In this document: positions 7,482 through 40,607 of the stretch, in pieces
Position numbering within the stretch: the stretch's first letter is position 1
How the letters are laid out: the number at the start of each line of letters is the position of its first letter
Origin: Blastocladiella emersonii ATCC 22665
Taxonomy: Eukaryota; Fungi; Blastocladiomycota
Direction: 5' to 3'
DNA: 64,000 bases
Assembly: GCA_025594325.1 (NCBI GenBank)
Contig: JANHCV010000013.1
Span: 620,001-684,000, forward strand
The notes under the pieces: generated by a model
Told to the model about the DNA's origin: nothing
Database searches by the model: none
What the model saw: only the letters and a program-made list of their open reading frames with translations
Made by a program: the position numbers and the translations under genes

Positions 7482-7517
7482 GAAACGCGTCGCGATATCA
7501 TGTGAGCGGCCGCGTGA
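7482..7517 (+). promoter_or_regulatory. Composite ACGCGTCG-N5-TCATGTG motif upstream of FBL2
   Basis: gaaACGCGTCGcgataTCATGTGagcggccgCGTGA, about 115 nt before the ATG. Confidence 0.7.
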
Positions 7518-7619
7518 TCGCGCACCCCTGCATGCACGGACGGGCCATCAGTCGGGCCATCCGCTCTTGCCCCCTCTCCGCCAACCGCTCAGCGCTACAC
7601 GCATACACGCATACACGCA

Positions 7620-9890
7620 ATGGAACTCGATGAAACCTCCGCGCAACATCCAGCGGCGCTGGCCGCGGTACCGGAGCGGCCCTTGCTGCCGCCTCGCGCA
7701 CCTTGTCCACCATCGCCAACGACCGACTCGTCCGTGGCGTGTGGTCGGTGCGCTTGCTCTGGGACCTGCTTCGCTCGGACCACGGTGTCGGTGAGCGGAC
7801 GGCCGCGCCCGCCGTGCTTAAAGAGTACAATTTTATCCTGGTGCCGCATGCGGCACCAGGAGCCGCTGCTACCAGTGGCTGGGGCTCGTTCCGAGCAGAC
7901 GCCGGTGCACGAGTTGCTGCTTTCCGCATTCGCGTCGTACGCATGCGCCGACCGGCTCGCGGGGCTCGTGCGGGGGTTGGATTCGAGCCAGGTCGCGGAC
8001 ATGCTTCGTGTGGCGCCCAGCAAGCGGCAGGTGTACTCGCTTTGGAGCGCCCCGCTGACACTGTACCCGCTCGTCCTGTTCTCGGCGGCGAAAGCGGGCC
8101 AGCTTGCGCTCTTCCGCTTGGCGCTGTCGGTGATTGCGGAGCACTGCCCGGTACTGCTCCAGGCCACGCTGACCCTCGACGAGTGGGAGGCGAAGGACTT
8201 CCACCTGTACTCGCCCAAGCCCGAGCAACACGCGCGGAAACGGGGGCCTGCCGTGAAACGTTACGAAGTCAATGCGAAGCAGCTCCCGCTTCGGATGATC
8301 GAGTACCTCGGCTCCCTGGCCATCGCGCAGTGGCAGTTTGGCATTCATTCTCAAAATTGTGGTCGACATGACGTCGACGGACTTGGACGCGCTGACGGCG
8401 TTCCTATGCCATCCGGGTATCTCGCACAGCATCGACTACCAACTCGGCGTCCTGCGAACGATAGCCGAGTACGAGACTGTTGACTGGCTCATCGCGAGCG
8501 GCGAGACTCGGCCGGTCGGCTCGCTTCTCGAGTCGCTCCTTGCTCGCGGGCCCGACATGTTCTTGCGCGCCATGGCGAAACACAAGCCTTACATCGTCCC
8601 GGGCTTGAAGGAAGCCGAGCTTGCGGCGATCGAAACGCACATCATGAGCTAGATCGTGGGCCAGCAGCGCATCACGCACGACCAGCTCGCGCAGATGTTT
8701 GCGCACGGATTCGTTCGCCTGCGCTCTCCGTTTTAAGCCAAGTTCATGATATGGGGTGTCGAGCATGACGATGCTGAACTGCTTGATGTGATCCGCGCTC
8801 ACCTTGACCAAGAGCGGTGGACTGACGCGATCGTGAAGGGTACGCAAGCTCGCGTCATCACTGATGGGTACCACTTTTTAATCACGCACAAACTGCGTCC
8901 GCATTATGTAGCCTTCCGCGACCTTCGCAGCGACGGAGTTCTCTCGCTTGCACGCTCCGCCACAATGGTCTTTGACTCTTCAGTACCGCACCTGCTCGTC
9001 CGTCTCGCCCCCGACTCGGGCGTCGAGGCTCTCCACGACCAGTTCCGCGACGCTCTGCTCTTACCCTACTCGCCCTCGGGAGCGCCTATTTCGCCCGGCG
9101 ACGCCCTCGCTTGGTTCGTCAGTCGTGACCTGATCGCCGACCCGATCGACGTCTTCGCGATCACGACCAAGACGCTTTCCGCAAACCAAACAAACAATCT
9201 GGCTTCCGCGCGGAGCGGCATCGCGTGGATCACGACGGTCGCGCTTGGTTCCTCGGAGACGCGAGGCCGCGCGCTCGAGCTTGGCACCGAGACAAACACC
9301 GCGCCATACTTGCTCGGCGCCATGCTGTTCAGCGCCGTCCTCGACCGCTCGCCGTGCACTTGGACGGCTCCGGGTCTCACGCTCTGCCGCGATTGCTCGA
9401 TTACGCACCAGGCCGTGTGGCGCGACGCGCTTGACGCGCTGGTTGACCGCTTCCCGACGGCTTTGCGTGATATTGACGCGAATTCTGCGAGGCCCAGGAC
9501 GCGGGCAAGGTCCGCCGGTGCGTAGCGGCCGGCTTGTGCAGCGCGTTCAACTGCACCTCTACAAACGCTTGCTGCGCTTCCAGCAGCGTGCCGCCGATGG
9601 AGCACCTCCTCGCGTCGTTTGCGCGCATCGACCCGCAGTGGGCTCGAAGCTTTGTTGATGTGGCGGCGCCAAGTCCTCCTCCCGTGCACAACGTACTTGA
9701 CGACACGACATCACCGCTAGCCCCCGCGCATCTCATCAACGCTCTGCTCGATCGCCTTGCGTCCTTGGATATTGGCGTGAGCGACGGAACCATGGCCGAA
9801 TTCGTTCAGATTATTCAGATGCAGCCACCGGTTTTTACGGTTCAGGATTGCCAGCAGTTGAATGAGATGCTCGACCAGTTGGCAATTTGA
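7620..9890 (+). pseudogene. FBL2: F-box-like family pseudogene (several frameshifts, two nonsense codons)
   Basis: Family motifs LLLSAFASYACADRL, LRMIEYLGSLA, LARGP, RWTDAIVKG|intron 8840-8911|AFRDL, TAPYLLGAML, CRDCSITHQAVW, NACCASS. Frameshifts near 7680, 7860, 8340 and 9477. TAG at 8650 and TAA at 8734. Confidence 0.8.
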
Positions 9891-10145
9891 GCTTCCAATT
9901 GTTTATGATAAGAAATGCATCCTGTTCTCCACCCGGCCCTCTTTACTCGCGGAAATAGATTATTTCATACTAAACATACCCCTGGGAGTCGCGTCCTTGC
10001 ACTTTCCATTCGTACTTGCAAACTTGGCCAGCTGGGTGTGGGCGGCGAATAGTTTGAGAATCTGGCGTCAAGGGGTGTCAAGTAACTACTCGGTAGCTGC
10101 GTCTCTCTGGTGGTGCCGCACGGTTCGCTCGCGAGGGACAGGCGA

Positions 10146-10181
10146 GAGACGCGTCGGGATATCATGTGGGCAGTCGCGTGA
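10146..10181 (+). promoter_or_regulatory. Composite motif upstream of FBL3
   Basis: gagACGCGTCGggataTCATGTGggcagtcgCGTGA. Confidence 0.7.
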
Positions 10182-10251
10182 CGCAAGCCCACTTCGCCGG
10201 GACTTCGGCGCTCAACTCCGCGTCCGCCTTCCTGCCCCTCAAACGACACCC

Positions 10252-12565
10252 ATGCAACTGGAAACCATGAAACACTCTATGCAACGTAAAGATCCACCGG
10301 AGCTTGGGCTGGGCAACGTGCCGCCCGAGCTCCTCGCGCAAATTCTTAAGCTGACTTATGTGCGATGCCGGATTCCCGCGGCTTCGAGCCAACTCGCCTC
10401 GGCCGTTCGCGATCCGACCACTCTCATTATCTGGGTGTTTCCTTGCTTCTTTCGGCTCTCTCGCGCTCCGGCCAGACCGGCGGCGCGGAACTTCACCACC
10501 AACACGCCCCAACACGTTTCCAAGCGCGCCGCCCACGGTCATGCGCAGCCGTCCGCTTCCTATTTTGACTTGTATTCACCCGACAGGGCGAAACCGCAGC
10601 GGGCGGCATTGCTCCTTTCGTTTGCTTCGTGCTTGTCGGGCCAACGGATGGTCTCATTTACTTCGACTAAGTCAACTTCTCAGCTCGCATCCCACCTCGT
10701 TCAATGCGGGCCTCGAGTAAGAAGCAGGCTGAGCATGACCGCTACTTTGCGCGAACCGCTTGAGGCGTTCCTTTTGGCCCTGTTTGAGGCTGCTGACGAT
10801 GTCTCGCACGCTGCTACGCTCAAGTCCATGATTGACGATGTTGTACGTGATACAGCCCGGCTTTTTGAAGTATCGCTGGCGTGGTCAGAGTGGACTTTGT
10901 ATTACCCAACGCGTTGGGATGCGTACGTACCATTTGTCAATCGATTGGCGCCATCAACGCGGCTTCGGCTCATCGATTATCTCGGTGCTCTTGCCATGCT
11001 CTCAAGGAACTGCAAGCTTTTGGACATAATTTGCGGGGTTGGCCTCGATTTGGCGCCGCTCGTCGAATTCGCCTCACTTCCGGCAGTCGCCACCAAGCTC
11101 ATGGATCGCATCACAAGGCTCAACAGTTCTGGGACTCCTTCTCCCCAGACGGCGGGCGCCGCACGCGTCCTCACTTGGCTTCTCGATAACGGCTGGAACA
11201 ACACATCACGGATGATTTTATCGACAGCGATTCTTGGTCTCGGCCCTGCTGCGTTTGTGAATGCGCTGAACAGCCACACCGAAATGGTCCTTCAGGCGCA
11301 CGGCATTGACGCAAAGAAACGGCTCTTCGAATCCACTCTCAAGTGACTTGCCAACCAACTCGTCTCAGCGCCGCAACTCGCAGCTATGCTTGATCTTGGC
11401 GCTCTTGAGCTATCTCTGGAGGATTGGGGCAGCTTTGTTGTCACCTCGTTCCTCAGCGCGAAAGTTGAGCTTTCAACTCACGACTGCTGGGGAATCTACT
11501 TTGCACGTGAACGCGTCAACGATTCGTCATGGAAAGAAGTCCTTGAACACGATACCGTTCCTTTCCCATCCGAGTTTGACAACGCACAAAACTGACTCAG
11601 TGCACCATGCACCAACTCGCTCAGCTTTTAGGCTCTCACTTAACACTAAAGCACCCCACAGTGTCGTTTGGTTTGCTCGGGAGACCTGCAGCATCGATAT
11701 GACATCCCGCTTCGCTCAAATTCTTGCAGCCTACAAATACCCGTCCGTTGGACTGACGAACTTGTTGAGCTGGGACCTTGTCGCTAACCCGCTTGATGTC
11801 CTTGCAATCGCGGCTCGCGCAATCGAGTTCCTTGGATCCAGTATGACAGACTTGTCCCTGACCTTCAATTGGACGGCTTGGATTGTCACCATCACGCTTG
11901 CCGCACCTACGACGCGAGAGAGTGCTCTCAACGTCTTGGCCGAAACAGGCACTGCGCCGTATTTTCTTGGCGCCATGTTTTGGGCCGGCATCTCAGACCT
12001 TGAGCCGTGCTTGGGTGACGCGCCCGAGATCCAAATTTGCCACGAGTGTCCTCTCATCTACCAGGAACCGTGGCGCGTCGCGCTTACCGCGCTTCTTGCG
12101 CGCTTCCCAGTTGCTTTCGCGGAGTACGATGATCACTTCTACCACAAATCAGGCGCCGACGCACAATTGTTAGCCAAGCGTCTCTCCGAATGCAGAGCGG
12201 CGGAACGAACCAACGGGTGCTGTGCCAAGTCGACCAATGATGGCCCGCTCGCAAATATGCTCGGCCAGATGTCTCGCGCAGACCCGCGGTCCATGTTCCT
12301 GTTCGTCAAACGAAGCCCACACGGTGCACGGACCCCGCTCTTGGCTTCCTTTCCCTCGGGTATCTTTGATGGCGTTGCCACTGCGTCTGAACTCGCGCGC
12401 CTCTCTTTCACTGGCGAAGGCCGCGCCGCCAAAAAACGCCATGCCCAAGCCGCTGGCGGAGACAAACCTGTGATCGACCAACTGAAGCGCCTGGCACCTG
12501 TCGCGACGAGCTGTCCAAACTTCAAGTGCGCCCTTGAAGTCATTGAGCAGAGGCTAGCCAATTAA
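10252..12565 (+). pseudogene. FBL3: F-box-like family copy, full length but with an in-frame TGA (11344) and a mutated splice donor (GT>AT at 11552)
   Basis: N-terminus LGLGNVPPELLAQILKL...LASAVRDP..W. Reading continues in frame after the TGA (LANQLVSAPQLAAMLDLGALE). Acceptor tcag at 11624 gives AFRLSL as in paralogs. C-module has CHECPLIYQEPW, GCCAKS, RADPRSMF, LKRLAPVA. Confidence 0.8.
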
Positions 12566-12593
12566 TTAGTCGACTGTGAGCCGATCACTTACC

Positions 12594-12617
12594 AATTAAT
12601 TTAATTAATTAAATTAA
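12594..12617. repeat. Pure A/T (TTAA-type) low-complexity tract
   Basis: aattaatttaattaattaaattaa in an otherwise GC-rich window. CCAATTAATT occurs at both 12558 and 12592. Confidence 0.8.
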
Positions 12618-12759
12618 GTAGATGTGTTGACAAGTCGTGGGAAAACCGTCACGATGGGCCGAAGAGCAGCAACAGGCTTTCCAGTTGTGACTGCACCAAG
12701 CGATCAGCTCCACGCCCATCCTGACTCGACTCCACTCTTTTCGTGGCGCATGAGAAACA

Positions 12760-13405
12760 GCGCAAATATCAGGCCGTTGGCTTATCAGCTCAAAATCCGT
12801 ACGTTTCAAGTTCCAAAGCTGACCGCGTTCTTTGACACATACATCGGACCCGCAGCGCTCTCAAGGCTGCCTGAACGGCGCGCGACACGAGTTGCTACTC
12901 GCCATGACCGCGGCCGCTGACGTCGCGCCCGCACCCATCGATGTCCCAGCCCTCGCCACCGCGCTACGGGGGCAGCCCGCGCCGCACCCACCCAAGCGAG
13001 TCTCTCGCTACGAACTCGCTCCTGTGCTTCCAGCTCCGCGGGCTCGCGGGCCAGCTGCCGACCCGCGTCCGTCTGCACCAGGTCTGGCCGTACCGCTACG
13101 AGACGCCCAACTGCGCCAAGTGCCTCAGAGCTGGTGTCGAGGTCGAAGACACGCAAGCGCACGCGTTCGCGTGCTCCGCCTCGCGCGCGCTCGTCCCCGC
13201 GGCGCTCGACAACGCAGCTCCCCGCATCAGCAGTGCTCTTGCGGCGGTCGCTGAGAACGAGATAGGCAGCGGTCTCCGCGCAAGCGTCGCCGGCTCGCTC
13301 GCCGAGCGGCTCCTCAACTTGAACCGCATCGAACGCACCGCGGCCGCCATCGTGGACGCGCCGCTCGTCGCGGGGTTCAAGCAGGTGTACAGCCACTTTT
13401 GCTGA
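12760..13405 (+). mobile_element. Non-LTR retrotransposon (LINE) remnant, C-terminal CCHC zinc-binding (zf-RVT-like) region
   Basis: ORF 12941-13405 contains FQLRGLAGQLPTRVRLHQVWPYRYETPNCAKC....EDTQAHAFAC, matching the F.L+..LPT...L....Y...C..C....ET..H.F.C pattern downstream of LINE RTs. No RT domain is seen. Confidence 0.65.
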
Positions 13406-13783: not shown

Positions 13784-13816
13784 GAGACGCGACGAACAAT
13801 CATGTGATCGGCGTGA
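13784..13816 (+). promoter_or_regulatory. Composite motif upstream of FBL4
   Basis: gagACGCGACGaacaaTCATGTGatcggCGTGA. Confidence 0.7.
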
Positions 13817-13912
13817 TCTCCCGCCGCCACAGGCGGTCCGTTTCGCCTTCACCAGAGGGGCTGCCTTTACAGCCGCGCTGGGGCCACCGCTCTCTTCGAT
13901 GAAAGTTTATCC

Positions 13913-16181
13913 ATGAAGCAAAAACGAACAAACAACTCCATGCAACGTGTTCGCCAAGCACCCCTTGGGCTTGGAGGGCTGCCGTTGTCAGCCCTCGAGC
14001 TTGTCATGCAGCTTAGCCTTGCCCGCCACATCGTCCCGGCTGCTTCGAGCCTTCTGACGGCGGCTGTTCGAGAGCCGCGAAATCTCTTCGTTTGGATGCT
14101 TCCCGACGTCTTTCCTGACCTTAAACTTTACAGGACGAGGCCTCCTGGCCAGGCGAAACTTCTCCCATCCATTGCCGCACAACTCCCGGTCCAACCGCCG
14201 TCGCTCAAGCGGGATGTCTTGCTCTGGTCCTTTGCGTCATGCTTTAGCGGCGATCGACTCGTGGCGTTTGTTTCTGACAAGTCCACCGAGCAGCTATCAG
14301 CGTTTGTGGCTTCGCGAGGCTACAATACAGCAACCAGCCTTCGGACGTTCCGCACCCTTCGAGAGCCGCTTGTGCCGTTCTTGCGAGTTCTTCTCGAAGC
14401 CGTCGCAACAGCGCGTTCAACACTCGTTGAAGTCTTAACCAACGACTTGCTCAATAATGCCCCTGGGATTCTTGATCTTACGCTCCCCTTTCGCAAGTGG
14501 CTGGCCTTACTCTCAAAGGCCGCTAAAAGCACCCTATTTCTGTCGGAACACAATCTCGACGCGTTTGGTGGGTCCTCCTCGCTTGATCTGGCCAACTGCC
14601 TCTGTACCTTTGCGATTCTTCACATGGACGATGAGCTCTTACGACCAATTCTCAAGCTTGGTCGCAGCTTGAGCCCGGCAGTAACTTTCACTTCACTCAA
14701 CCCAACGGCGACTGCGGTTCGTCTCAGGATTGCACACACCGGGTTTCCTGACAAGAGCGATGAAATCGAGGCTGTGGATCGCCGGGCCAGCGCAGCTCGT
14801 GTACTCGATTGGCTCCTTGCCCACAACTGGACCATCGACTTGCCTTCAAACATCTCCTTGATAAATAGAGTCGCTTTCCTCGGACCCAAGGTTTTATCGC
14901 GCAACATCATCCAATATCCAGAACAGATGCTTGAAAATCACACCGGCCGGCAAAAACAGGCACTTTTTCTGAACATTCGGAAGATGCTCTTGCTTGGGTT
15001 TGTTTCCGAGTCCGAGCTTGCGGCACTTGTCGATCACGGAGCATTTGAGATGTCAGTTCAGAATTGGGCCGATGTCATTGTCACTTCATTCTTCAACTCG
15101 ATCCACAACATGGAGCTGGATTGGGGAGCGAGTTTTGCGCGTGCTCGGGTCGAAACCGCGTTGTGGGATGACGTCCTCGTTGAAGGTACGGTCCGCGGAA
15201 GTTGCTTACTTGCGGCTCATTCTTTCTGACACTCACTGTGCGGTGCCCTCGCTAGCGTTTCGACTCTCGCATACGAATGCTGCTGTACAGAGCATGGTGA
15301 AGCTTGCTCGGCAAACCAGCGCGCGTGACATGATGCCTCGATTCGTAGAGATCCTCGCAGCCAGCATTAACGTCTCCAGCTCGCTTGTCAGCCTGCTTGA
15401 TTGGGATCTTATTGCGGATCTGCTTGATATCATGACGATCGTGTGCAGGACCATTGGCTTGCTTGGCGCCGAGACGGTCAACTTGAGTTCCGTCCCTCCG
15501 AAATGGACCTCATGGATCGCCGTTGTTACACTTGCTGCTCCTTCGACGCGCGCTCAGGCACTTGACGTCCTGGCCGCGACCAGCACAGCCCCGTATTTTC
15601 TTGGCGCTATGCTTTGGGCTGCCCTCGAAGACCACGAGCCGTGCACGGACTACGCGCCTGGGCTCGAAATCTGCGAGAAATGCCCGCTTTCGTACCAGCA
15701 ACCGTGGCGTGACGCACTTGGCGCACTCCTTGCCCGCTTTCCGACTGCTCTCAACGAGTACGACAACAAGTTTTTCCCAACAAAAAACCATGCCGCGGGC
15801 ATCCTTACTCGGTCCTTGGACGACGCTTCAAAGCACGAACTCAGCAACACATGCTGCGCCAAGTCCTCAGGCAGTGACAGCCCATTTGCCAACACTCTCG
15901 CTGCGATCGCTCGAGCCGACCCCCGCTCCATGTTTCAATTCTTGAAGCGGAACCGGGGAGTCGTAAACGGCTTAGTCGGCCTCCTGCCTGCGGCCATCTT
16001 TGATGGTGGTGTGGCCTCGATCTATGAGCTTGCCGAGCTCACGTTCACACGCGATGACCGAGCGAGCCTGATTTGTTCCCTCAAGCGCCTCGCGCCGGTC
16101 GCAACTAATGATTCTGCCTTTGATCACGCGTTGGCTGTGCTCGAGCGGCGCCTCAATGGTTCATTGTTTAATGCTGAGTGA
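13913..16181 (+). CDS. FBL4: intact F-box-like helical protein with Cys motif, predicted 732 aa (exons 13913-15185, 15256-16181)
   Basis: Two ORFs are joined in frame by a 70-nt gtacgg...gctag phase-1 intron (VEG|AFRLS). F-box-like LGLGGLPLSALELVMQL...VPAASSLLTAAVREPRNLFVW, plus CEKCPLSYQQPW and TCCAKS. Confidence 0.8.
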
Positions 16182-16361: not shown

Positions 16362-16395
16362 AACACGCGACGGACATTCATGTGACCGAACGTGA
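16362..16395 (+). promoter_or_regulatory. Composite motif upstream of FBL5
   Basis: aacACGCGACGgacatTCATGTGaccgaaCGTGA. Confidence 0.7.
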
Positions 16396-19601: not shown

Positions 19602-19637
19602 GAGACGCGTCGAGTTATCATGTGACCCGCGGCGTGA
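19602..19637 (+). promoter_or_regulatory. Composite motif upstream of FBL6
   Basis: gagACGCGTCGagttaTCATGTGacccgcggCGTGA. Confidence 0.7.
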
Positions 19638-19728: not shown

Positions 19729-22108
19729 ATGAACGACTCGATGCAACATGCAACCCTTGGTCTAGGCGACCTGCCTGCCGAGGTGCTCGCCGAAGTCTCA
19801 CGGCTCGCCGACTCTCGAGATTGCGTGCCGGCTTGCTCGGGCCTGCTTGCCTCGGCTGTCCGCGAGCCTCGCACTCTCAGCTTCTGGACCTATCCTTGCT
19901 ACTATCGCCTCCCTCGCTCGGGTATCCCTTCCGTCCCCACTCTTGACTACGGAGCAACCAGGGGCTCATATGGCTATGCGAGCATGAACCAGGCTTTTTC
20001 CATTCGACCAAGCTATGCCTCTGCATAAACCAGCTACCATTCCGCGATGCCAACTTATCCCTATTTGATACACCGCCCGCTGGATCAAACCGTCACGCAA
20101 GCGGCGCCCGATAATCGGCACATTCTTCTTCGCGCGTTTGCGTCCTGCGTCGGCGGGGACCGGCTGGCCGCGTTTGCGCTCGGCAAGTCGGCTACCGATC
20201 TTGTGCCACTTTGCGTACCGCCTGTTTGGGACATGCCTGTGACCCCACCGAGTCTAACAAAAGTTTTGCAGGAGCCGCTTGACCCCTTCTTTCGCGTCAT
20301 TATCGAAGCGGCCGCGGCTCCTTTGCCCGCCCTGTTCGAGTCCCTGGTGACCGAAATGGCTCGCGCGACGCCGCAGGTCTTGAGCTTGGCGCTGCCCTGG
20401 TGGCAGTGGATGTTCCTATGCCCTCACGACATGCGGCCGAGCACGTCGGGCCTCAGCGGCAACGTTTCACAAACAACGCTTCGGCTGGTTGATTTCCTTG
20501 GTGTTTTGGCCTTCCTTGGCTTGAACGATGACCTCCTTCGGGCTGTTTGCAAGTCAGGCTGCGGCTTGGCTCCACTTGTCGCGTTTGCCTCTCAAAACGA
20601 ACTGGCGTCGCTTATCGTGGGCCGGATCAAGAGTCTGGCAAACTTTTAAAATGTGCCCAAAACCAATGAAATGGTGGCCAAGTGGGCGCGCGCCGCCCGC
20701 GTTCTTGATTGGCTTCTCAGCAACAGCTGGACGGTCCCGGACGGGTGGAACGCCAATTCTTACAACAACGACAAGGCCTCCCTTGTTCGTATCATCTCGA
20801 TCCTTGGGTCCGGCGCACTGGCTCGATCCGTGACGAACCACGCGAGTGTTGTCTTGGTTGGCCACACGGTCGAGGACAAGAAGGCCTTGAGGGGTACGGT
20901 CATGCGCTGGGTTCGCGACGGGCGAATCAAGCAGGCCGAGCTGACGAATCTGTTGAGCTGCAGCGGCGCCCTCGACCTCGCGTTCCCTGACTGGTGCGAG
21001 TTCGTGGTCTCGGCCTTGGAGGGCCCGATCTTTGAGTTGTTCTACTCGCACTGGGCGGTCGATTTTGCGCGTAGCCGCGTCGCCCCTGAACAATGGGACG
21101 AGCTCCTCCTCGCTGGTACGCGCCATTCTAGATATGTTACGTGTTGTGTTGCCCCGATCCCGACTGACACCGCGTACAGCCTTCAAAACTTCACTTGAAT
21201 ATGCGGGACTCGCAGGCGTGATCTGGCTCGCGCGCCAGACTGCTTCAAGCGACTTGACCGTGGAATTCGCTCAGATTCTCGCGCGCAGCAGCTCGATGGC
21301 CAAGTCACTCGAAAACTTGCCCAACTGGCGGCTTTTCATCGACGCGCTCGACCTCCTCTCAATCATCGCTCGAGCCTTGAGCATGAACGGCGCCGAAGTG
21401 GTCGACCTGACCGAGGTCACGACCTGGACGGCGCTTATCGCCGTTGCCGCGCTTGCCGCTCCAAGCACGCGAACTCGTGCTCTCGATATCCTGGCCGAGA
21501 CGGGCTCGGCGCCGTACTTTCTCGGCGCAATCCTCTGGGCCAGCGTCGACGAGCAACACCCCTGCTCCTACTACACTACAGAGCTCCAGCTCTGCTCCGA
21601 GTGCCCACTCACTGCCCTGCTCGCCCGCTTCCCCACCGCGCTTTCCGCTTACGAAAACCGATACTACGAGGAATCGGCCTTGATCACGGGTGAATTTGTC
21701 GGCCTGTTCAAGGAGCTCCGGGATGACGAGTGCGGCAACAATTGCTGTGCCAAGCTGGTCCCGAATGGGCCGCTCCAGCACGTGTATGGGTCGGTCGCCC
21801 GCGCGGATCCGCGGTCGATGTTCCTCTTCCTCAAGCGCAACCGTGACGTAGTGGACGAGGTGATCGAGCTCCTGCCCGCGGGCATCTTTGACGGCGGCGT
21901 TGCCACTTGCTATGAGCTCGGCCAACTCGTTACGACCTCGTATGCCGGGCCGCTCGTCACGCAGCTCAAGCGCGTCGCTCCCATCGCCACGAGCCAGCCT
22001 GGCTTCTCTCAAACCGTAGAGAACATCCAGCAGAAGCTTATCGCGCGAACCGACCGCCGCAGCCACGAGGCGCACATGCAACGGATCTTTGGCAGCCGCT
22101 CGCCTTGA
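19729..22108 (+). pseudogene. FBL6: F-box-like family copy with two in-frame TAA (20026, 20647) and an in-frame deletion of the YQQPWRDAL motif
   Basis: Clearest F-box-like start (LGLGDLPAEVLAEVSRLA). Three ORFs lie in one frame, separated by TAA. Intron 21116-21179 (LAG|AFKTSLE). CSECPL runs directly into TALLARFP. The first TAA could lie in an unproven intron (19922-20101). Confidence 0.7.
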
Positions 22109-25963: not shown

Positions 25964-25984
25964 AACGTGATATCGCGACGCGTC
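25964..25984 (-). promoter_or_regulatory. Variant composite motif upstream of the zinc-finger gene
   Basis: gACGCGTCGcgataTCACGTTg, about 113 nt before the ATG. It shares ACGCGTCGCGATATCA with the FBL2 motif. Confidence 0.6.
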
Positions 25985-27236
25985 GCTCGCTGATGCTCTC
26001 ACCAAGCCTCTCGCGCGCGATACTCAGGTACTACAGCAAGTTGCTTCTATACGACGCGTCCCACGCGCCGGACTCGGCCGCCGACCAATCCTCTGCGCAC
26101 AGTCGATCCGACTCGCGGCCCCGCCCACTCGCCATGGCGCTGACCAGACCCCACGCAAACGAACGCGACGATCGCAGCGATGACACAGTGTACCCAGTCC
26201 CGGCGCCAGATCCAGCAGAGCGAGCGGAAGGAACGCGATCCTCCCTCGACACGATGAACGCGATCAGCGGGCGGCATCTGCTGAAGCTGGCGAGCGGGTC
26301 GGGCCCAGCTTGAGCCGACCGCAGGGGCCGCATAGAATGTGAGGGAGAAGAGCGGCCGACGGGTGGGCGAGATCGCGAATCGGGCGACCTGCGAACGAGG
26401 GTCGAGGTGCAAGAGTGACGAGTCGGCGGCGGTCTGGACTGATTGCGCAACCCTGCCCGGCTTCAGGCTGAGCTGCGAAGTGAGATCACTTGAGCAGTGC
26501 AACTGATGGCGATCCTAGAAACATGATGCGCGTAGGTCAGTCAGCACGCCGTCAGCGGAGCAAACAGCCGCAGGTCGCACCAGTTCGCACGCTGCTCGTA
26601 ACGTTTTCACAAGGTTGCGCAACCACGTTGAACAACCATCGTTGCTGACGTCATCGACTGGAGGACAGCACCTCGTCCATCCTTGAGTGCGGCGGAGTTG
26701 TTCTTTGGCCGGCGACGCCCAGGTGTTACATCAAGTAACATGTAGAGGCCTAGCGTAGCCAGATGACGCCGCACTCGGCCGACGGCAGCTCAAGTCCGCG
26801 GCAGGTTTGAAGAGTGGGGTCGGCCGGATATAAACTCGCGTCTAGAGTGATTGCATGGAGTGCCGCCGAAGCGGGTGCGTCGAGCGTAAAGAGCAGGAGA
26901 TAGGAAGGGCTCGGCTCGCGGAGAAGCGAAAGGCGAAAGGCGAAACGTGACGCGACGCGACTTTGAATCACGCGCCGGTCATCTTTCCCTCTTCCCGCAA
27001 ACCTCGATTCATGGACGGCTCGAATCACTTGATGCAAATCCAACTATGTGTCATGTAATCGCCAGCGTTGGCGTTTGAGAGACGCTCGGCTCGCTGGTTG
27101 CATCTGTGCGAACGCACCTTGTCTGCTCAACTCGGCCGACATCTTTGCTTCAGAATCGGGCTCAGGTTCTGTCAGCGCAACACTTCTACCCTACTCTATT
27201 CATCAGCTGAGAGCCGCCGTGCGACCGAGCCCGCCA

Positions 27237-29769: not shown

Positions 29770-31078
29770 GCTGCACGACGTCACTGTGTCGCTCGATATT
29801 TGATAATTTTTGCATGTTCGTTTGATTACTGAGTCTCTCTTTTGTGGGGCTCAGAGTCGCTCTTTGCGGTATCTCGGCAAGATAGCGCGGGAAGCGCGGC
29901 CGTTAGTCGTCGTCGTGACGCTCGACCTCGCGACGGCGACGGGCGCCGTGGTGAGCGCACCGCTTGGCCGACCGCTGCAGTTCCTGTTCCGCGAGCTCGA
30001 CACGGCCATGATGAGGTAGCTGATCGTCATGAAGCGTTTCGCTCGGATTCACGCCCATCGCTGACCCATTCGCGCGCGGCACCACGACCGCCGCGCCGAT
30101 CTGTCGCCTCTCCACGCGTCGGTCCCGTCGTTAACATGGTTCATGATCAGCTCGAGAGATCGCTTGTAGTTTCATGCGCGCCGTGCGCGGTGGCGGGCTT
30201 CCCGTGCTGCGTCCAACAACGTGGACCGCGATTGCTGTGATACCAGTGACGTGCGGCGACATGTACGAGCTGGACGACGACGGCCCGACCGCGATAAGGA
30301 CTCGTTATGTGCCGGATCTGGGCCGGAGGCGCGTCCACAGTGATTGGTATTACCAAGTGTGCCCTCGCCGTTCAAGTTCGCGAACGGGCGCATGTGTGCT
30401 TGATGTTGGGACTGATCTTGTGAAAGTCTGGTTTCATGAGCGCCTGGGTGCATTCATGACCGTGTTACGACGCGGGAGAAGAAGCGCGTCGCGGCCAAGC
30501 GGCCGAAAGTTTGAGCGCCGCGCCGCTCCCCTAGCGCTTTCTCTCGCCAGCTGCCCCTAATCCATGAAACGTTGCCACTTCCTTGAATCACTCTATGCAA
30601 CGCACTTGAGGAACCAGTAAACTGCCGAATTTACGTTACGCCGACCTTCCAGCTGAACTTGCCATCACCGTCCTGTTGTTCGTTGAGCCGGCCTGCGCCG
30701 TCCCCGTCGCCTTGCGCACTCAGTACTTGACCGCCAAAGCTGATCTGGTTTGCCCAGCATGAACTTTTCGCTGTTTTGCCCGCATTACGCTGGAATACCG
30801 GGAAAGCTTCCACGAGCGTGAGGATCAAGTGTCAAAGGTTAACGTGGGCCTTACCGAGGCTAAACAACGTGGATGGACGGAATTGATCTAAATATTGACG
30901 CATGTAATCGCTGTGAATACGCGCAGGGGATGTCGAAAGACAGGCCCCATAGCTCTCGCGTTGCGCCACTTGGTGATCGCGAGCGGGGTGGCAGGGCAAA
31001 CACGTGAGTGGCTTGACCGAGTGCGGGACGAAATTGTCTCGCGGTGCGTCTCCATGATCCCTCCCCTCGCTCGTTGCA

Positions 31079-34000
31079 ATGAAGCCAAAGAAGAAAACGA
31101 AAAAGCCTGCGACTAGCGGCAATGCATCCAAACCTGCTATTATGTCCAAGTCGCTGAACGCCGCGGTCCCGGCGCTTCTCACATGCCGCACGGACGAGCG
31201 CGGTGACCGAATCGAAGGATTCCGCCCGTTCCGTCACCGCCCGCCGCGTGACCTGTTCATGTACCATGATTCTCGCACCCGCGCCGACCTGCACGCTCTC
31301 CTGTGCGGGTGCGGCGACTTGGCTGAAGTTGCGCGTACCGTGTCCGAAGCGGCAGTCAAGGGCGGGACGGCGACGCTCTCGTTCACGCTCAACGACTGGC
31401 AGCCCGAAGTCCTCGCGCGGAACTTGCTGATCTTGCATGCCATTGCTCACGTTCCGTCGGTCGAGATCGACTCGTCAACCCTCACGCGCTGGGTCGGTCA
31501 GCTCTGGTACTCGCACTTTCTCGATCCCGACGCCCTCGAATTTTGGAAAGCCCAGCTGCGTGCTTGTCTCGATACGGATTGGCTCAACGTCATGGCTGAG
31601 TCGCCCATTCGCGTCTTGAACGACTCAACCCTGGTCGAGCTCCGCCGTTGCTGGCGCGCCTGGCTTGACTTGGGCTGGTCCGTCGAGGCTTTCCGAGTCA
31701 AGCGCGATAATTTCAACACCAAACATTTTGATATCAACGACTATGGGTCTCCCGACTGCACGTATTACGCGTGGGCATCGTCCTTGGCCATGGAGCGGCT
31801 GCACGCACAGTATCGTTACGTGGTCCAGGCCGTTGCGTCCGCGCGCCTCTCGTGTAACCTCGAGCGCCTTGGTGAGTACGGTGTTTGTACGCAGTCGGGG
31901 CATGACCGTTCTGGTCGCAAACTCGTTGTCAATCCGACGATGCTCCTCCTCGCCAGCGACGGTGCCGCCTACTTTGCCGCCTACAGCGATCCGCTCCCTG
32001 GTGCATGCTTCGACTTTCTCGTCGAGGAAGGCCTCCCCGAGCCGCACATGATTTCCCGCTTGGATGATTGGGTCCAGTCGCTTTCGAAGGCCATGCGCGG
32101 TGACGGCTTCCGAGTTCAAGTCAGTTTCATTCACGGCCACGCGGTTGCGGTCATGGAGGAGCTCATCGCCGATTCTACTATGCGCTTCGATATCGTGGAC
32201 ACGAATACGCTCATGACGACCTGCGGACTTCTCACCATCCTTGTTCACGGTTCACCGCTGCTTCGCAACAATGACGACTTTTCGGAGCGCGCCCGCCTGC
32301 TGACCTACTCCATGGAGGACGTGGAGGTGAAGACGGGATCACGGCTTGCGTACCTTCGTTTCTTGTCCGGCCTCAAGCCCGGAGCTTTCCCGGCTCTGTT
32401 TGGCGTAACTCTTGCGGAAAGGTTGTCAGACGACGACTCAGCAACGTGGTCTCAGCCCTTCTCGTGGGCATTTGACCCAGGAGTTGATCGCACCGTCCGC
32501 TACCTCACTTTCACCAAGCTTCCGCATCCCACAGTGCCGACTTCGCTGGACGCTTCGCCTTACCTGCGCAATGCGTTGACCGATTGCGCGGCCAATTTGT
32601 TGTCAACCGATGGCCCAGGCACGTTATCCGAGCGCTTATCAACTGTCTCCCAGACTGACAACTAACCACGACTGCGCGTGTATGTGCTCTAGTGACGAGA
32701 ACCGTTTTCATCAAACTTCTCGCGTTCGCTTTCGCGTCGAAACGCCTTGTCTGGGAGGGCAGCTTGGCAGATTCCGTCGGCCCTTACTGGCAATTGTTGC
32801 CCGCTGTTGAATTCTTAACTGGCGTTGTCTTGTCCGCTGGTAAGCCGACAAACAAGGCCGACACCTTGGATCCCCTTGAGCTCTCAGTTGGTTTGCCCTA
32901 CTATGGAATTGCAGGGATCAATGGGGTGAGCAACAATTACCTTGTCGAGTTGACCGTTCCCGCGGACAAACAGTTGGCTGTTGGATCGCCCTCCCTCTTG
33001 TTGGAAATTGCTCGCCCGAGGCGTGGTCCGGTTGGTTTCGCCGCCCTTCGCGTCAACTCGACAATCCAGGACGATTCTCCGTCCGTGCGCGTCATAGGAC
33101 TTGTTCCTCGCTTTCTGGTGGACGCCGCCCCGGCCGGTACCACGGTCGGCGTGCACTCTCAGGGCCTCGACGAGTCGAGCAAATTCATCAACGGCAAGTA
33201 TGTACCGCTCTTCGCTGCCCAAGTTACGCTTGTCAAAGTGGAGTCGAACACGCAGCTTTTGCGCGCGCTTGACCAGTCGCTTCACTCACCGGCTCCTTCT
33301 GGCCCGTCCGATCCTTGCAACTGGCCGCTTTCAGTCGAGCACGTAATTGACAATGCGACTGTGGTCGAGCTTGTGCTCAAGTTTAAACCTGGCGCGAAGA
33401 CCGTGTTTGAGCTCGTTCCAAAGTCTGATTCTTGGTCGGAGCGCGGCGCCGTGACCCTTTTCGTCGATGGACAGCGCCAAACGATGCGCGTTTCGTCTCC
33501 CGTGTCCGTTACCGACATGCATATCTCTCGCGAGCAGGGCCGCGTGACGCTTGTCCTCAAGCGCATCATGAACGTGGGCCGCAGCATGGGGCTTCCGCCT
33601 TCGCTTCCTCGCATTGGCCGCTGCATGCCGGTTGCTCCTCATGGCGAACTCTTTCAGCGCTTGATGCGAACGGCGATGTTTTTGACGCAGGACATTATCG
33701 AAACGAGTGGCTCGATTCGACCAGCGGAACGCTCATCGAACAACAGCCTCATTGATCGTCTGCTCGAGCAGCATGCTGAGAACATGACCGCCAAAGTGCT
33801 CTCAACGATGATTGCTGATCTCACAGTCCAATTGTTCGCCGCTTCTGACACTAAACGGCATCTTGTTGCGATGCGGAATCCCGAGGGCGAGGTTGTTGCG
33901 ATGATCTTTCTCAACCGCTCCGTGCTTATCCCCTCCGCTGGGCCCGGCTTTATCCCGACTCCCGCTCTCGAGTGTACTGTCGCGCTAGCGGGAGAAAGGG

Positions 34001-34786: not shown

Positions 34787-34843
34787 CGGCCGCACTTGCG
34801 TAGGCGGCGCGGTCTTTTCACATCGCCCACGCGAGAGCGGCCG
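34787..34843 (-). repeat. Central stem-loop of the foldback repeat (copy 5)
   Basis: CGGCCGCTCTCGCGTGGGCG-ATGTGAAAAGACCGCGC-CGCCTACGCAAGTGCGGCCG. Confidence 0.8.
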
Positions 34844-36059
34844 GCCCGCGCGGTGCGAGGTGGTCAGTGAAGCTCAAGTTCGCTGCCGTACAGAGGAAAA
34901 CGTGTCGGTGGCGCGTGGATGAGGTCTGACGCGTGAAAGCGGGGCGATTGGTGCCGGAGAACGTCAATGATACGCAATGAGTGCGCCAGCGGTTGAAGTA
35001 CGTCTCGAGAACATCGGAAGTGCGGCATGGTATACATGACAGGGTTAAATGAGTGAAGTGGCCCTGAACATCGAAGGGCAGAGTATCGAGCGCCGTCACG
35101 TACTGCGCAAAGGGACTGCCAGTTCGGGCGCTTGGGTCGCACTTCAGGGCATTCTAGCATCTCCGTGGCCCATGAAGGCATTGAGTCCAGCGATCACCAT
35201 CGAGACTGAACGAGTGACTTTGAGGCGCCATCCAACCCAACCTTCTTACAACCTTAAGTCGGCGCAGCATTGCCCAACGATTGCAACTGTGTTGTGCGGT
35301 CCCACTGGTGTCGGCTTATTTCGCTCGAATAACGCCTTCAACCACGTCATACGACCTCACGCAGAAGCAAAAATGCAATTGGGTTAACGTGTGCGTGGAA
35401 ATTCGTCGTGGACTCGGAGCGATCGCGGAAGCAAAGGCGGACCGACGGCTTGCTGCAAGGATGAATAGGCAAGAAACCCGTTTTGAGTGCGGGACCTTCC
35501 ACGAGACTTGATCAAGACCACATTGCATTGAGTTACATTGTCATCAGGACGGGCGCCCGGTCGTGATAGGGAGCGATAGCAGTTGCAGCGCGGCGCTGTG
35601 ATGAGTCCGCCGCCACAGGCCTCCAGGTCGCGTGAGTGGCGCGGCGCGTCATCCGTCGCGGCAGCCCACATCAAAGAAACTATAATAAATCCTCGAGGAG
35701 ATAGAGTAAAAAACATCAGAAGGGTGCGCCCCGCCTCTGAAGGCGCGGTATTCCGCCGTGTTGATCAGAGTATCGAGCACGGGACGACAGACTAAACTGC
35801 CTATGCGGTCCCCACGCCAGCAGGTGCACGCCTACACTGCACGAACCTCAGCACAAGTACCTGACTCCCACCCACGGTACGCGACGTTGCCGACCCTCCA
35901 TCCTCGCACCAGAGCAACATGGCCCGTCCATTCCAGGGGGACTGTGAAAAGGACGAGTACAAGTCGACAAAACGGAGAAGTAAGAAAAACCGCACACGAC
36001 AAACTCGGGTCCAAGTAAGCGTCTCAACAATGAATGGCATCAATCGTATACTCACCCAA

Positions 36060-36437
36060 TCACCTCGTGCCCTTTGGCATCAGTCGTGCCGCGTTCAGCC
36101 CGTACGATTTGCACGCGACGCGGACTTAGTGGCGAAACCCCCACTCGGCGGTGGTCGCAGCGGTCACGGCAACGACCTTAGCCAGCCAGTCGCGTGTCGC
36201 ATCGACCGTCACTTCCCCATCCCTAGCCTTGAGCAGAACCCTCATCGACCGAGCTTTACCCACATCGGGGAGCGCTTTCCGTCAAGTGCCCCGCGCGGGA
36301 GCATCCGCAAGATGTGCCGCGGGGGGTCGGTCGGGATGTCGATAACCCCGTCGAGTACGAGCTTGGGAGCTGCGCGGTACAGCTGTTGGATGTTCCACGC
36401 CGTGTCCGATCCGGGTCCGCTGGTGCCGCTCGCCAAT
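36060..36437 (-). pseudogene. FBL8: C-terminal remnant paralogous to FBL9
   Basis: ELASGTSGPGSDTAWNIQQLYRAAPKLVLD...LPRGALDG...W, then (frameshifted) DATRDWLAKVVAV. Colinear with the FBL9 C-terminus. Confidence 0.8.
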
Positions 36438-37270
36438 TCAGCGCACTCCCGCGTGCGGCGCGGAATTTTCACGGCGCACGCGCGAGTGCAGCCCAGCGGT
36501 GCGGAGCGAGCGAGCCGGCGAGGTCCAAGCGCGGCTGCTGAGTGGCAAACAGTTGTTGCTGGTAGTGGTTCCCAGAGCAGGCGAGCAACGCGTAGGTTGG
36601 TCGAATGAGGTCTGGGGAGCGATTGAGCTCAACAAGGTAGGCAGTGACTACACCAGAGAAATGAGACGGTCATGTTGTAAGTGCACGGTTCTGGTGAGCG
36701 ACATTCACGCGGCTGCATACGCGTCTCAAGCTGAACGAGCTGACGCTCATGAACTACGTTGGTCCTGGCAGTGAGACTCCCGGGCATTTGTCCCAGGCGC
36801 AGTCGCATCAAACCGTGACCGCCACCACCGAGTTGGCGAAGGTCGCGGCTTGCGGGAGCTGCGTGCTCCGCTCGGAAATCATGATGGACCTTCAGTACAC
36901 TCGTCGGCGAGCGGATCGAGCAGCGAAGGCATGGCCCATGGCGAATTAGGGTCGCCCGAGTATCGGCGCAGGTGGAGCAGACTGCTGCGGAGAGCCGCGT
37001 GGTGCCTGACACCTGGTTTTGGTGCTGTTACCGCCCAGTCAACGACGAGCTTGCGAGCCTCATGCGGCGCGACGGCAACTGGCCAAACACCGGACACTTC
37101 AAGTTTACACCAAACTTGGTCCACGACCTGCTTTAAGCCCACAAATCGCAATGCGTCAAGTCCCATATTCCATCCTCTCCTACATCTCGACAGCTCCATG
37201 GCGGGGTCGGCGGAGTGACCCAACGTGACGCGCCGGCCGCCCTTCAACCTGACGCGTCGCCCCCGACGCC
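36438..37270 (-). mobile_element. Left arm plus central hairpin of the foldback repeat (copy 6), replacing most of FBL8
   Basis: Colinear with 49620-50308 (+), with shared runs gcgcgtcacgttgggtcac..gccgaccccgccatggag, ctgctccacctgcgccgatactcg and gctctgggaaccactac. Hairpin at 36438-36494. Confidence 0.7.
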
Positions 37271-37402
37271 AGCCGCACCTTCTTCAGCGCGTTGAATCTC
37301 TCACGAGCACGAACGTCAGCGCGAGAGCGCACGGTGAGGAGCACGGTGGTAGTATGAGGCATGTGCGGGGGTATCAGACCGAGCGAACAGCAACAGGAGC
37401 GG

Positions 37403-37438
37403 TGACGCCACACGTCACATGATTGAACGTCGCGTCTC
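37403..37438 (-). promoter_or_regulatory. Composite motif of FBL8
   Basis: Minus strand gagACGCGACGttcaaTCATGTGacgtgtggCGTCA. Confidence 0.7.
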
Positions 37439-37945
37439 GCATTCGCGCTGGCCCGCGGCCGATGCACCTCAGTAAGCGTCTCCCGTCTCCCGTCTCCATG
37501 ATGCGTGCGCTTCGTGTTCTCACAGCCGGCACATCTTCCACACCTCGGCTCCGCAATTAAACGACTCCCCGCTTGCCAAACACCAAATCTTGGCTCACGA
37601 GCTGGGCAGAACGCTCGTGTTCTGTGGACTGAAACTTTTGATTCACTAGAAGGGAACCTCTCCTCTGGCATTCGGCGTGTACGGGGTAGCGTGAAGCTAT
37701 GTTGCGCGCAGGAGGTATCCAAGGTTTTTAAATGTGCGTCCTTGGCCCAAAGTGACGGTTAAAGAGCAACTTGGTGGCCACGGGCCGAACCTGTCGAAAA
37801 AGCGCGTCCTTAATGTCGCGCGTCGCAAAGTGCATGAAGCCTACCTCCGCCCCCGCGAGGTCGCGCGACATCAGCGCCGATCCGGAGCAACGACACACTC
37901 GCGTTCGCAGCATTGGACTCGAAAACCACTCGTTTATTCATCAAA

Positions 37946-40501
37946 TCACTCCGTCGCCAATGGCAACAGCTGCACCGCGTCCAGCCTGCAAGCTACGCAT
38001 TCGGCGCGAACCGCCTCGCGGAACTTGGGCTTGGCGGTCGCCACCGCGGCCACCGCAAACATTTCCGCGAGCCAGTCGCGGGCATCGTCCATGGCGACCT
38101 CGCCACGCTGCGCGCCTTTCAGAATGTCCATCACCTCGTCCAGGACCCACCCAGGCTGACGCAGCCCGTCAAACGCACCGCGCGGGAGTAGTCGCAAGGC
38201 GTGATGCGGAACGTCGAAGGGAAAGTCAAGGAACTCATCAAGTAGGAGCTTTGGAGCTGCGCGGTACAGCTGTTCAATGATCCACGCCGTGTCTGAGCCA
38301 GGCCCGCTGGTGCCGCTCGCGAGCTCAACACGTCGCAGTTTGTCGGCATCATGCAGCGCACTGTCCGAGAAAAGCAGATTGCGCGCCGCAACCGGGATCG
38401 ATTCGGGTAGGAGAGTGAAGCCCGGAATCTTTGTGAGCATCGCGTTGACGGCGTACTGCCACGGCGCCCACGCGGCGTTTGGGAGGTCACCCGGCGGGGC
38501 ATTGGGATCCGCAAGGCGAGTGCGCGGATGAAGTTGGGGTGAATCGGCAGCCTGGATGAGAGCATTCACAGCGGCGCTCTGAGGAAGCGATGCAAGATAC
38601 GCGTCCATCGTCCAGCACCCGCCCTTGCCTCGAGACTTGGGAAGTAGTAGCAGGTAAAAGTACCAGTGCGCGATTCGCATCGACTCGAGTGTGCGGGCGA
38701 GGCGTTTCCTGGTCGCTGCCGAGGTTCGCTGATCACACATTAGCGCGACGAGAAACGGAGCCGAGAACTCGGGTATTTGGTCCTCGACCTTCCACGCGCG
38801 AAGCTCTGGGGTGCGGCCGCGTGGGTGAAGGACGACGTGAGCATGATTGAAAGCGTCGAGAAACGCGATCAGGTCGAACATTGCGCCGGCCTGTTCGAGT
38901 GCAGCGAGAACAGCGCTGTTGAGCAGCGACTCCAATCTTACGCCCGTCTGCATGGCTGCGGCCAAGACCGTGGTGGTTTCCTGAAGCAGTTTTTCGGTAT
39001 CGCGATGGCCCGCAGACGGGGTTGATTGAACTTTGGCGAGTTTGTTGGTTCCGGTCACGATCGACATGACTAAGCGAGGAGGCAAGCGCTACGTCAGTGA
39101 GCGGAGGCCTATTGGGCTGCGGCGGACGCTCGTACCAGCTGGAAGCGCTGTTGTCAGCTCTTCATGCGAAAGCCGACGCGCCAACGGCAAGAAATCTGCG
39201 ACGGGTGTCCAAATCGCAAGGAAGAGGAAGCGCGCAATTTGGCCCATATTCATGAAGCGACGTTCAAAGATCTCGGTCAGGACCGCGCAGTGCTCGCCGA
39301 TATCGGCCATGGCAAGCAGCTCATCCAAGGCGTCATCGCGCCCGCCAAGAATGGCCGCTGCAAACCGTTTCGTTGGATGCTTAAGGTAGACCGGGCCCGG
39401 GGCGAAGCGGAGGATCATCTGCGCGATGCAATCGCTGCTAGCGCGGTCGAGGAGCTGAGTCGCGAGCGCCAGCACCTCGTCCGAGTCGGTCAGCTCGCCG
39501 TCCTCGCCGGTAAACCACGCGAGGGTCGAGATGACGAGGTCGGTTGGGAGCGACGCGTCAAACGCGCGCTCGATGAGAGGTTGGTACGCAAAGGATATGA
39601 AGTTTTCGCCTTGAATCCCATACCTGGGCTGCTCGAGAATCGCAAGCACCTCGGGGCGCCACCACTTGAGCGCAACGAGCGCGAGGTAGCCAAAGCAGCG
39701 CGGAGTCACCAAGGTGCCGGGGTCGGTAATCTCATAAGTCCACAAATCGGACCACGTATAGTCGCTGGAACGTGTCCGAGTCCGCCAGTCCGGGTCAAGG
39801 CACGCCAGCAAGCCAAAGGGGAGGTCGTGCGACGCTTCTGGAAGCTGTGCAAGCGCGTCCAGCACGAGCGTGAGTAGCTTGATTCGGCCCTGCGCGACGA
39901 AGACCATGGCGAGCTGGCGAAGCACAAAGAACTGTGGCACCAGCCGGAGCGCGGAATCCGAGAGACAGCGCCGACCGCGCTCTTCAAACTCCAATTCAAA
40001 CTGCATTGCCCAAGCGCGGACCTTCTTGTCTGGAAGCGAGTTGAGCGCTTTCGTCGAATACCGCACAATGAGACGAGTGACAGTCGGCGCGTCAAACACG
40101 TCAGCCGACGGAAGCCAACGCACGCGGTCAAGTTCACGGTGCAGGGCTGCAATCCTCTCGCGGCACGCGAGGTGGCACAGGTACGGCTCGAGCGGCATTT
40201 CCTCGCGCGGATTGATCGGGCCGCGAAGCTTGTGGCGGGCACAGGGGCACTCGCCCTTGCCACACGGGTGCAGCCGGCCCCAGCCGCACAGGTCGGGCCG
40301 TAACATGAAAGTAAACCGCCAAACCCACTGTGTGACCGAATCAGACGCAAGCTCGGCGAATCCACTCGTGGTAAGCGGGATGGCGACCTGGGGCACGGAG
40401 AGCTGCAGGACACGCCCGATCAACTCGGCGGGCAAGTCGGAGAATCGGGCGAGGCTAGCGTCCTCGGGCATATTGCAAGCAGTCATTTCATTGGATTCCA
40501 T
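37946..40501 (-). CDS. FBL9: intact, divergent F-box-like family protein lacking the Cys motif, predicted 829 aa (exons 40501-39136, 39069-37946)
   Basis: MESNEM...ARFSDLPAELIGRVLQL...LASDSVTQWVW (F-box-like), RCFGYLALVAL, APGPV. A 66-nt gtacga...cttag phase-1 intron sits at the family position (LPAG|VMS). C-module GVRLESLLN, APWQYAVNAMLTKIP, RAAPKLL, LPRGAFDG aligns with paralogs. Confidence 0.72.
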
Positions 40502-40581
40502 GATGGTGGTGCTTACGTGCTCGGCGCCTGGAAGCGGCGACGCGAAGCCAGCGAGGCCGCGGGCTTTCGGCGGCGCCTCGC

Positions 40582-40607
40582 GCGCGTCACATGATTGATC
40601 GACGCGT
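40582..40607 (-). promoter_or_regulatory. Composite motif upstream of FBL9
   Basis: Minus strand ACGCGTCGatcaaTCATGTGacgcg, about 86 nt before the ATG. Confidence 0.7.

Follow-up and report, generated by a model that had tools for sequence, protein, structure and literature searches.

A two-box promoter element precedes seven loci of the orphan FBL gene family in a 64-kb stretch of the Blastocladiella emersonii ATCC 22665 genome (contig JANHCV010000013.1, positions 620,001 to 684,000; hereafter the window). The element is composed of ACGCGWCG, five variable nucleotides, and TCATGTG (ACGCGWCG-N5-TCATGTG, i.e. ACGCGWCGNNNNNTCATGTG). It is real and under selection, and most likely serves as a promoter site for two factors. 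The favored reading is that the element is probably a promoter-proximal composite site for two transcription factors, situated in TATA-less, GC-rich promoters.

The window holds exactly seven exact matches to ACGCGWCGNNNNNTCATGTG (Table 1), and 100 dinucleotide-preserving shuffles gave none. The right half, TCATGTG, is rare: of its 12 occurrences on both strands, 7 follow ACGCGWCG at a gap of exactly 5 nt. ACGCGWCG, the left half, is frequent, with 54 occurrences in the CpG-rich DNA of the window. When the window was scanned for ACGCG-Nx-TCAYGTG with x from 0 to 30, eight matches were found at x = 8 and no more than one at every other spacing. The eighth match at x = 8 (60757) is taken as chance because of its position within the coding sequence of a GH31 glucosidase. 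Unbiased counting of 6- to 8-mers over 300 nt ahead of each of the seven genes returned the words of the motif alone as present in at least six of the seven, and none in shuffled controls. The first-pass annotation, made from the letters of the window, had listed seven FBL loci with these two boxes and these five-base spacers. The sites and spacers are the same, although the positions it gave are off by 3-13 nt.

The ACGCG and CAYGTG cores are exactly 9 nt apart in every window copy. The left box reads ACGCGT in four copies and ACGCGA in three, and the CGCG centre is present in all seven. The right box is TCATGTG throughout and extends to TCATGTGA in six copies, the g10149 copy reading ATGTGG. 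Each box has dyad symmetry, the left as ACGCGT and the right as TCAYGTGA, a single base short of the palindrome TCACGTGA, and their centres are 14 bp apart. The spacer between them is 71% A/T in a region that is 60-70% GC. A GATA-factor reading of the spacer was rejected, as GATA occurs in only 3/7 spacers. The consensus in the FBL cluster is GAG-ACGCG(T/A)CG-N4-A-TCATGTGA, often with a (C)GTGA half-site 6-9 nt further on. This third box is CGTGA in five copies, beginning at the 6th to 9th base past TCATGTG; it is CGTCA in the 37435 copy and lacking in the 40607 copy, so the earlier remark that CGTGA usually follows is right with two exceptions. At 9-12 bp from the E-box centre, (C)GTGA can be read as another half E-box, and independent sites in other B. 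emersonii loci (L005 and L006) have it too. Allowing two mismatches adds one further window copy, a degenerate one on the minus strand (ACGCGTCGCGATATCACGTT).

Outside of the element, the promoters of the seven copies have diverged. The 100 and 200 nt upstream, anchored on the motif, give a mean pair score of -12.7, compared to -14.0 ± 6.1 for shuffled sequence, and the 26-nt core scores 13.5 versus -5.4. The surrounding promoter DNA had been said not to align, and upstream the flanks are indeed at the shuffled level; weak residual similarity is left downstream, in the segment +23 to +100. At four-fold degenerate sites of identical codons in the C-modules of the FBL genes, 27-53% of positions are identical, where 29% is expected by chance from composition, which means that neutral sites are near saturation. 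Against this background, all 15 specified bases of the motif are identical in 7/7 copies, a mark of purifying selection on the motif.

The same comparison bears on the idea that the element is a passive, functionless remnant of recent duplication or gene conversion. Such a remnant would account for the fact that the seven copies are paralogous and that spacers are alike within subgroups (cgata/ggata and ttcaa/atcaa). However, the flanks are randomized and the four-fold sites nearly saturated while the motif is intact, and gene conversion would have homogenized the flanks too. Passive retention is effectively refuted by the flank scores and the four-fold saturation, and it is given almost no weight. 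A dead eighth FBL 5' end (~5840) has lost the motif: it keeps its leader, ATGGAACTCGATGAAAACTTTATGCAAC, and reads ACGCT... plus TCATGaGTG at a lengthened distance, which looks like neutral decay. In the FBL cluster, the element was probably inherited through tandem duplication and has been held by selection while its surroundings diverged.

The element also has a constant relation to the gene that follows. All seven copies are in the sense orientation. Where the ATG survives (six copies), the first base of the motif lies 103-135 nt and its end 83-115 nt before the ATG, the latter in agreement with the first estimate of about 85-115 nt. A search of the FBL promoters for a TATA-like word between motif and ATG found none. 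On the sense strand, this interval is 51-66% pyrimidine and forms a mildly pyrimidine-rich tract. Most window genes are without the element, among them the bHLH (basic helix-loop-helix), GH31, APD1-like, PI-PLC-like, and DUF4470 genes.

This placement could also be that of a core-promoter element, i.e. a TATA substitute that fixes the start site by bringing in basal transcription machinery or a general factor that displaces nucleosomes. The narrow range of ATG distances extends to two other genes, an ICln gene (121 nt) and a C2H2-like gene (118-132 nt), every gene-linked copy is strictly oriented, and the promoters are TATA-less. In yeasts, the class-B bHLH protein Cbf1 serves as a general regulatory factor, and in Schizosaccharomyces pombe the HomolD/HomolE boxes are a TATA substitute of fixed geometry. 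However, the absence of the element from most window genes means that it marks a subset of genes, as the signal of a regulon would. A core-promoter role is unlikely as the explanation; it partly overlaps with the composite-site reading and does not exclude a composite regulatory site.

Other B. emersonii DNA was scanned in eight loci (L001-L008), comprising ~145 kb of non-redundant sequence from the 34-Mb genome. The ACGCG-Nx-TCAYGTG scan peaked again at x = 8, with three matches, two of which are a recent duplicate. A second spacing class, ACGCG-N9-TCAYGTG, has two matches with a GCGCCAC-like spacer, and copies with one mismatch add further sites. The consensus of these loci is GAGACGCGTCG-N4-ATCAYGTGA. 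The match with the FBL consensus extends to positions that the search had left free: a GAG ahead of ACGCG and a TCG behind it, plus an A on the left of TCA and another on the right of GTG. The copy at L007 17408 (+) reads ACGCGTCGATCAATCACGTG and is identical to the FBL9 copy, including the spacer, except for CACGTG in place of CATGTG. It forms a divergent pair with L007 16686 (-), similar to the degenerate pair in the window (Table 1). At L006 407 (-), the motif stands in sense orientation 121 nt ahead of the ATG of an unrelated, conserved Voldacs/ICln gene.

Distant FBL relatives in these loci are mostly without the two boxes and carry other upstream blocks, e.g. TTGCGCCACA. FBL9-like relatives at L002 15850-16100 (-), L002 21740-21950 (-), and L004 9750-9800 (+) share (ACGCGT)TGCGCCACA instead of the E-box half, a block that is possibly E2F-like. 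The motif had been tied to the FBL paralogs. It does stand ahead of them, but it is not FBL-specific, as it recurs at unrelated genes and is mostly missing from the distant relatives. From its distribution, the element is a genome-wide signal that the FBL cluster carries; it did not arise with the FBL genes. With its CATGTG, the cluster has a CpG-to-TpG variant of the usual CACGTG, one that became fixed in the cluster's ancestor and was kept since.

Three of the copies elsewhere, at L005 11963-11982 (-), L005 5776-5795 (-), and L002 1814-1833 (+), lie 100-220 nt past FBL-like stop codons and point back into the genes. These convergent copies may be promoters for antisense transcripts or what is left of neighbor genes that were lost. 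In L005, a recent duplication has produced a repeated unit, and the copies are close to its edge, with the motif ~50 nt inside. This position, together with the location of the motif at the 5' edge of detectable paralog homology and the copies that lack an intact downstream gene, would suit the terminus of a small mobile element or a boundary of duplication or recombination, whether passive or acting as a recombination signal. The first-pass annotation had named the end of a small transposable element as one outcome that would undo its proposal. That outcome is disfavored, as the DNA upstream of the motif shows no homology and a second terminus is lacking (no explicit search for target-site duplications was made). 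Moreover, the downstream homology is the gene itself, distance and orientation to start codons are constant even at the unrelated ICln gene, and a kept core with a variable internal spacer is the pattern of a protein-binding site. A mobile-element or recombination origin thus has a very slight chance of being correct.

For the favored composite site, the geometry, the orientation, and the narrow ATG distance fit a promoter-proximal site of two touching DNA-binding proteins. Dyad centres 14 bp apart and an A/T-rich spacer suggest direct contact between the proteins or a single pre-formed complex. The right box, TCAYGTGA, would most likely be read by a dimeric class-B bHLH protein. The left box, with its ACGCGT-type CGCG core, would be read by a second factor, for which a KilA-N/APSES protein of the MBF type, proposed from the ACGCGT core, is the leading candidate; other readers of CGCG may serve. 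We infer that the element lies upstream of the transcription start, that such proteins bind it cooperatively, and that the marked genes are switched jointly. What the first reading proposed on cell-cycle timing and on cooperativity is still hypothetical.

One class-B bHLH protein is encoded in the window, which fits the earlier assignment of the right box to class-B bHLH proteins, as does the CAYGTG core with its flanking T in 7/7 copies. The gene encodes a low-complexity protein with one bHLH domain (Table 1). Its basic region, KRQLHIRMEQQRR, has the H5-E9-R13 residues (H-x3-E-x3-R) of class B, and its closest solved relatives are BMAL1, MITF, Myc, and Max. The gene lies ~6 kb from the FBL9 promoter, and no two-box was seen upstream of it. 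Its product is a candidate CAYGTG reader; proximity is no evidence that it regulates the cluster.

Several observations weigh against a two-factor promoter site. Some copies (L005 11982 and 5795, L002 1814, and L007 17408) are without an intact downstream gene or face the 3' end of a gene in convergent orientation. The seven window copies are paralogous and represent one origin followed by retention, not seven independent events. Five of these seven FBL copies are broken, possibly broken (g16365), or truncated, so that there is no evident functional cluster to be co-regulated. The 5' untranslated region could include the motif. Lastly, three of the seven left boxes are ACGCGA and not the palindromic ACGCGT.

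A second conserved block is found at the start codon. It reads ATGAA-(n)-ACTC(C/T/G)ATGCAA(Y) and lies 125-148 nt past the two boxes where both occur. With at most one mismatch, this leader block has 34 matches in 198 kb, against roughly 12 expected by a rough estimate. In most FBL-type genes, the block is in frame and encodes M(K/N)..SMQ. In FBL9, the ICln gene (CAT GCA), and g7485/g5840, and before the gene at 2641, it is off-frame or forms two-codon open reading frames (ORFs; ATGAAATGA, ATGAAATAG). Because its frame varies, the block is possibly a leader that acts at the DNA or RNA level. Identity with the RFX X-box was rejected as a poor match. At the degenerate minus-strand copy of the two-box, an MKSSNSMQ leader (ACTCCATGCAA) lies at +132 and is followed by the body of the C2H2-like gene. 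Leader and body are separated by an in-frame stop, likely an intron or a break.

Two further readings were weighed. In the first, the two boxes and the leader (ATGAA ... ACTCCATGCAA, its frame varying by gene) would form a species-wide promoter-leader cassette. The cassette would define a regulon of lineage-specific (accessory) gene families in B. emersonii, which new families join by acquiring it, and its readers would be a KilA-N (MBF-like) protein and a class-B bHLH protein that depend on each other as partners. This proposal is doubtful. If true, it would involve a pairing of KilA-N and class-B bHLH proteins that has not been described in any fungus. In the second, the element is transcribed and acts in the 5' leader RNA, either as a start-stop upstream ORF (AUG-UGA inside TCATGTGA) or as a small hairpin. 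ATGTGA is present in 6/7 copies, and conserved leader blocks and mini-ORFs near start codons do exist in the B. emersonii genome. However, the start-stop frame is broken in g10149 (ATGTGG), the genome-wide form CACGTG has no ATG, and RNAalifold returned -0.18 kcal/mol with 0 compensatory pairs. In addition, each half is a dyad at the DNA level, of the kind that dimeric DNA-binding proteins typically recognize. An RNA-level role is highly improbable.

The FBL genes that carry the element differ in their condition. The intact paralog is g13787, in which exon 1 ends at 15185 and a phase-1 intron separates it from exon 2 (15256-16181). In tblastn with g13787, the plus-strand copies are 31-35% identical in the N-module and 43-53% in the C-module. 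A single in-frame stop is found in g10149 (11344), and g16365 has a frame change between 16690 and 16809 that is either a break or an unrecognized extra intron. The g19605 copy, which has stops at 20026 and 20647, is a pseudogene, and g7485 is decayed. FBL9 is divergent and apparently intact, with an N-module ORF down to 39089 and a C-module at 39085-37946 (-). It is unlinked to the other paralogs by BLAST and has the N-terminal LPAEL signature in common with them. The partial FBL9-like duplicate at the 37435 copy has no ATG for 236 nt past the motif and retains a C-terminal fragment (36063-36439). The motif had been noted to persist in pseudogenes and in the divergent FBL9, and it is present in g19605, g10149, g7485, the possibly broken g16365, the 37435 fragment, and FBL9. 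Its persistence in broken copies is unsurprising, since 1-3 stops per 2.2 kb implies recent inactivation.

The FBL proteins have few recognizable relatives. Their exons were searched one by one and not as a joined, spliced protein. A Pfam search of the FBL modules gave no domain, and a homologous-protein search with the N-module gave no match. Three ORFs of the window, looked up by exact sequence, have no record. F-box identity is not supported, as the Pfam search of seven N-termini was empty except for F-box_4 at E=0.16 in one distant relative; a short LPxELL-like signature is the sole F-box resemblance of the N-termini. An exhaustive profile search with the C-module among 1.84 billion representatives returned nine weak relatives, and the eight that were looked up are all on contigs 9 and 13 of the B. 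emersonii assembly (GCA_025594325.1 / JANHCV). This assembly of ATCC 22665 is composed of 21 contigs (PMC9730499).

Table 1. Positions of the two-box copies, start-codon leader blocks, and associated features. Positions are those of the window unless another locus is named.
Feature	Position	Strand	Sequence or remark	ATG of gene	CGTGA third box
Two-box, g7485	7485..7504	+	ACGCGTCG-cgata-TCATGTG	7620	7513-7517
Two-box, g10149	10149..10168	+	spacer ggata	10267 (ATGAAA)	10177-10181
Two-box, g13787	13787..13806	+	spacer aacaa	13913 (start of exon 1)	13812-13816
Two-box, g16365	16365..16384	+	spacer gacat	16478	16391-16395
Two-box, g19605	19605..19624	+	spacer agtta	19729	19633-19637
Two-box ahead of partial FBL9-like duplicate	37416..37435	-	spacer ttcaa		
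Two-box, FBL9	40588..40607	-	spacer atcaa	40501	
Degenerate two-box	25964-25983	-	faces away from the copy in the next row, ~970 nt between		
Degenerate two-box	26955-26974	+			
Eighth FBL-like 5' end	5716..5867	+	leader from 5841 kept; two-box decayed		
Leader block, g10149	10274-10284	+	ACTCTATGCAA		
Leader block, g13787	13935-13945	+			
Leader block, g19605	19736-19746	+			
Leader block	5857-5867	+			
Leader block	27027-27037	+			
Leader block, MKSSNSMQ leader	25838-25828	-			
Leader block	26861-26851	-			
Leader block	40483-40473	-			
Leader block, other loci (among others)	L006 8545				
Leader block, other loci (among others)	L006 11715				
Leader block, other loci (among others)	L006 281	-			
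Leader block, other loci (among others)	L001 13315				
Leader block, other loci (among others)	L001 16078				
Leader block, other loci (among others)	L003 7380				
bHLH gene	46552..48672	+	706-aa protein; Pfam HLH E=5e-7		

Three further sites in the window carry parts of the element. Ahead of an unrelated Ser/Ala/Pro-rich ORF (2641-4902), the region 2534-2582 (+) contains ACGCGTCG-N7-CACGTG, one base over the FBL spacing, which fits the second spacing class. The same region has GACGCGTCGATCACGCG, then CCAATGAAATAG...ATGCAACCATG. The DUF4470 gene has a lone CACGTGA 78 nt ahead of its ATG (31001-31110, +) with no ACGCG partner, and its basic leader, MKPKKKTKKP, resembles the MKKKTKAN of g16365. 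The region 54500-54640 (-) is promoter-like, with ACGCG-N11-CACGTG, a perfect TCACGTGA 7 nt on, a CT-rich tract, and ACTTCATGCAG ~125 nt downstream; its spacing is non-canonical.

The promoter grammar of zoosporic, early-diverging fungi is almost uncharted. A two-box element of rigid geometry, present at many gene families specific to the species, is a handle for finding transcription factors and would help to delimit a regulon in Blastocladiella, which is used as a model of phototaxis and sporulation. It is also a starting point for expression tools in zoosporic fungi. The retention of CATGTG through divergence that saturates neutral sites is evidence that the site tolerates, or prefers, an M-box-like form.

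Known systems resemble the element in part. A search of the literature found no link between Blastocladiella and ACGCGT, no fixed composite of an MluI cell-cycle box (MCB) and an E-box, and no description of the motif. The MCB is bound by KilA-N/APSES factors such as MBF (Mbp1-Swi6) and PCG2, and both MBF/Mbp1 and PCG2 bind ACGCGT (PMC4862756). The FBL copies have the ACGCGT core in 4/7 and CGCG in 7/7. In contrast to the MCB, 3/7 copies have ACGCGA, and the conserved GAG...CG extension of the FBL motif is foreign to the MCB. The right box resembles the class-B E-box or M-box (CACGTG; TCATGTG(A) of MITF/TFE), with TCATGTG in 7/7 and TCATGTGA in 6/7 copies, and the Cbf1 site, RTCACRTG, fits 5/7 copies on the opposite strand. 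However, the MiT/TFE proteins are metazoan, and the FBL E-box has a second box tied to it at a distance of 14 bp.

Within B. emersonii, the nearest likeness is the genome-wide motif GACGCGTC-N7-CACGTG (= ACGCGT-N8-CACGTG), which has the same left core, the ACGCG-N9-CAYGTG spacing, and a sense-oriented position ~100 nt before the ATG; the scan of the ~145 kb from other loci recovers it. The FBL copies differ from it in that all have CATGTG, 3/7 have ACGCGA, and an extra (C)GTGA is usual. Composite sites of fixed geometry are known for Cbf1-Met4-Met28, Pho4-Pho2, and Sox-Oct. The likeness is that of a bHLH site which gains specificity from a second sequence set a short, constant distance away. 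The site of Cbf1-Met4-Met28 is reportedly TCACGTG plus an adjacent RYAAT. Though the partner box and the spacing of the FBL motif differ from these, the FBL element most likely works like such fixed-geometry composite sites.

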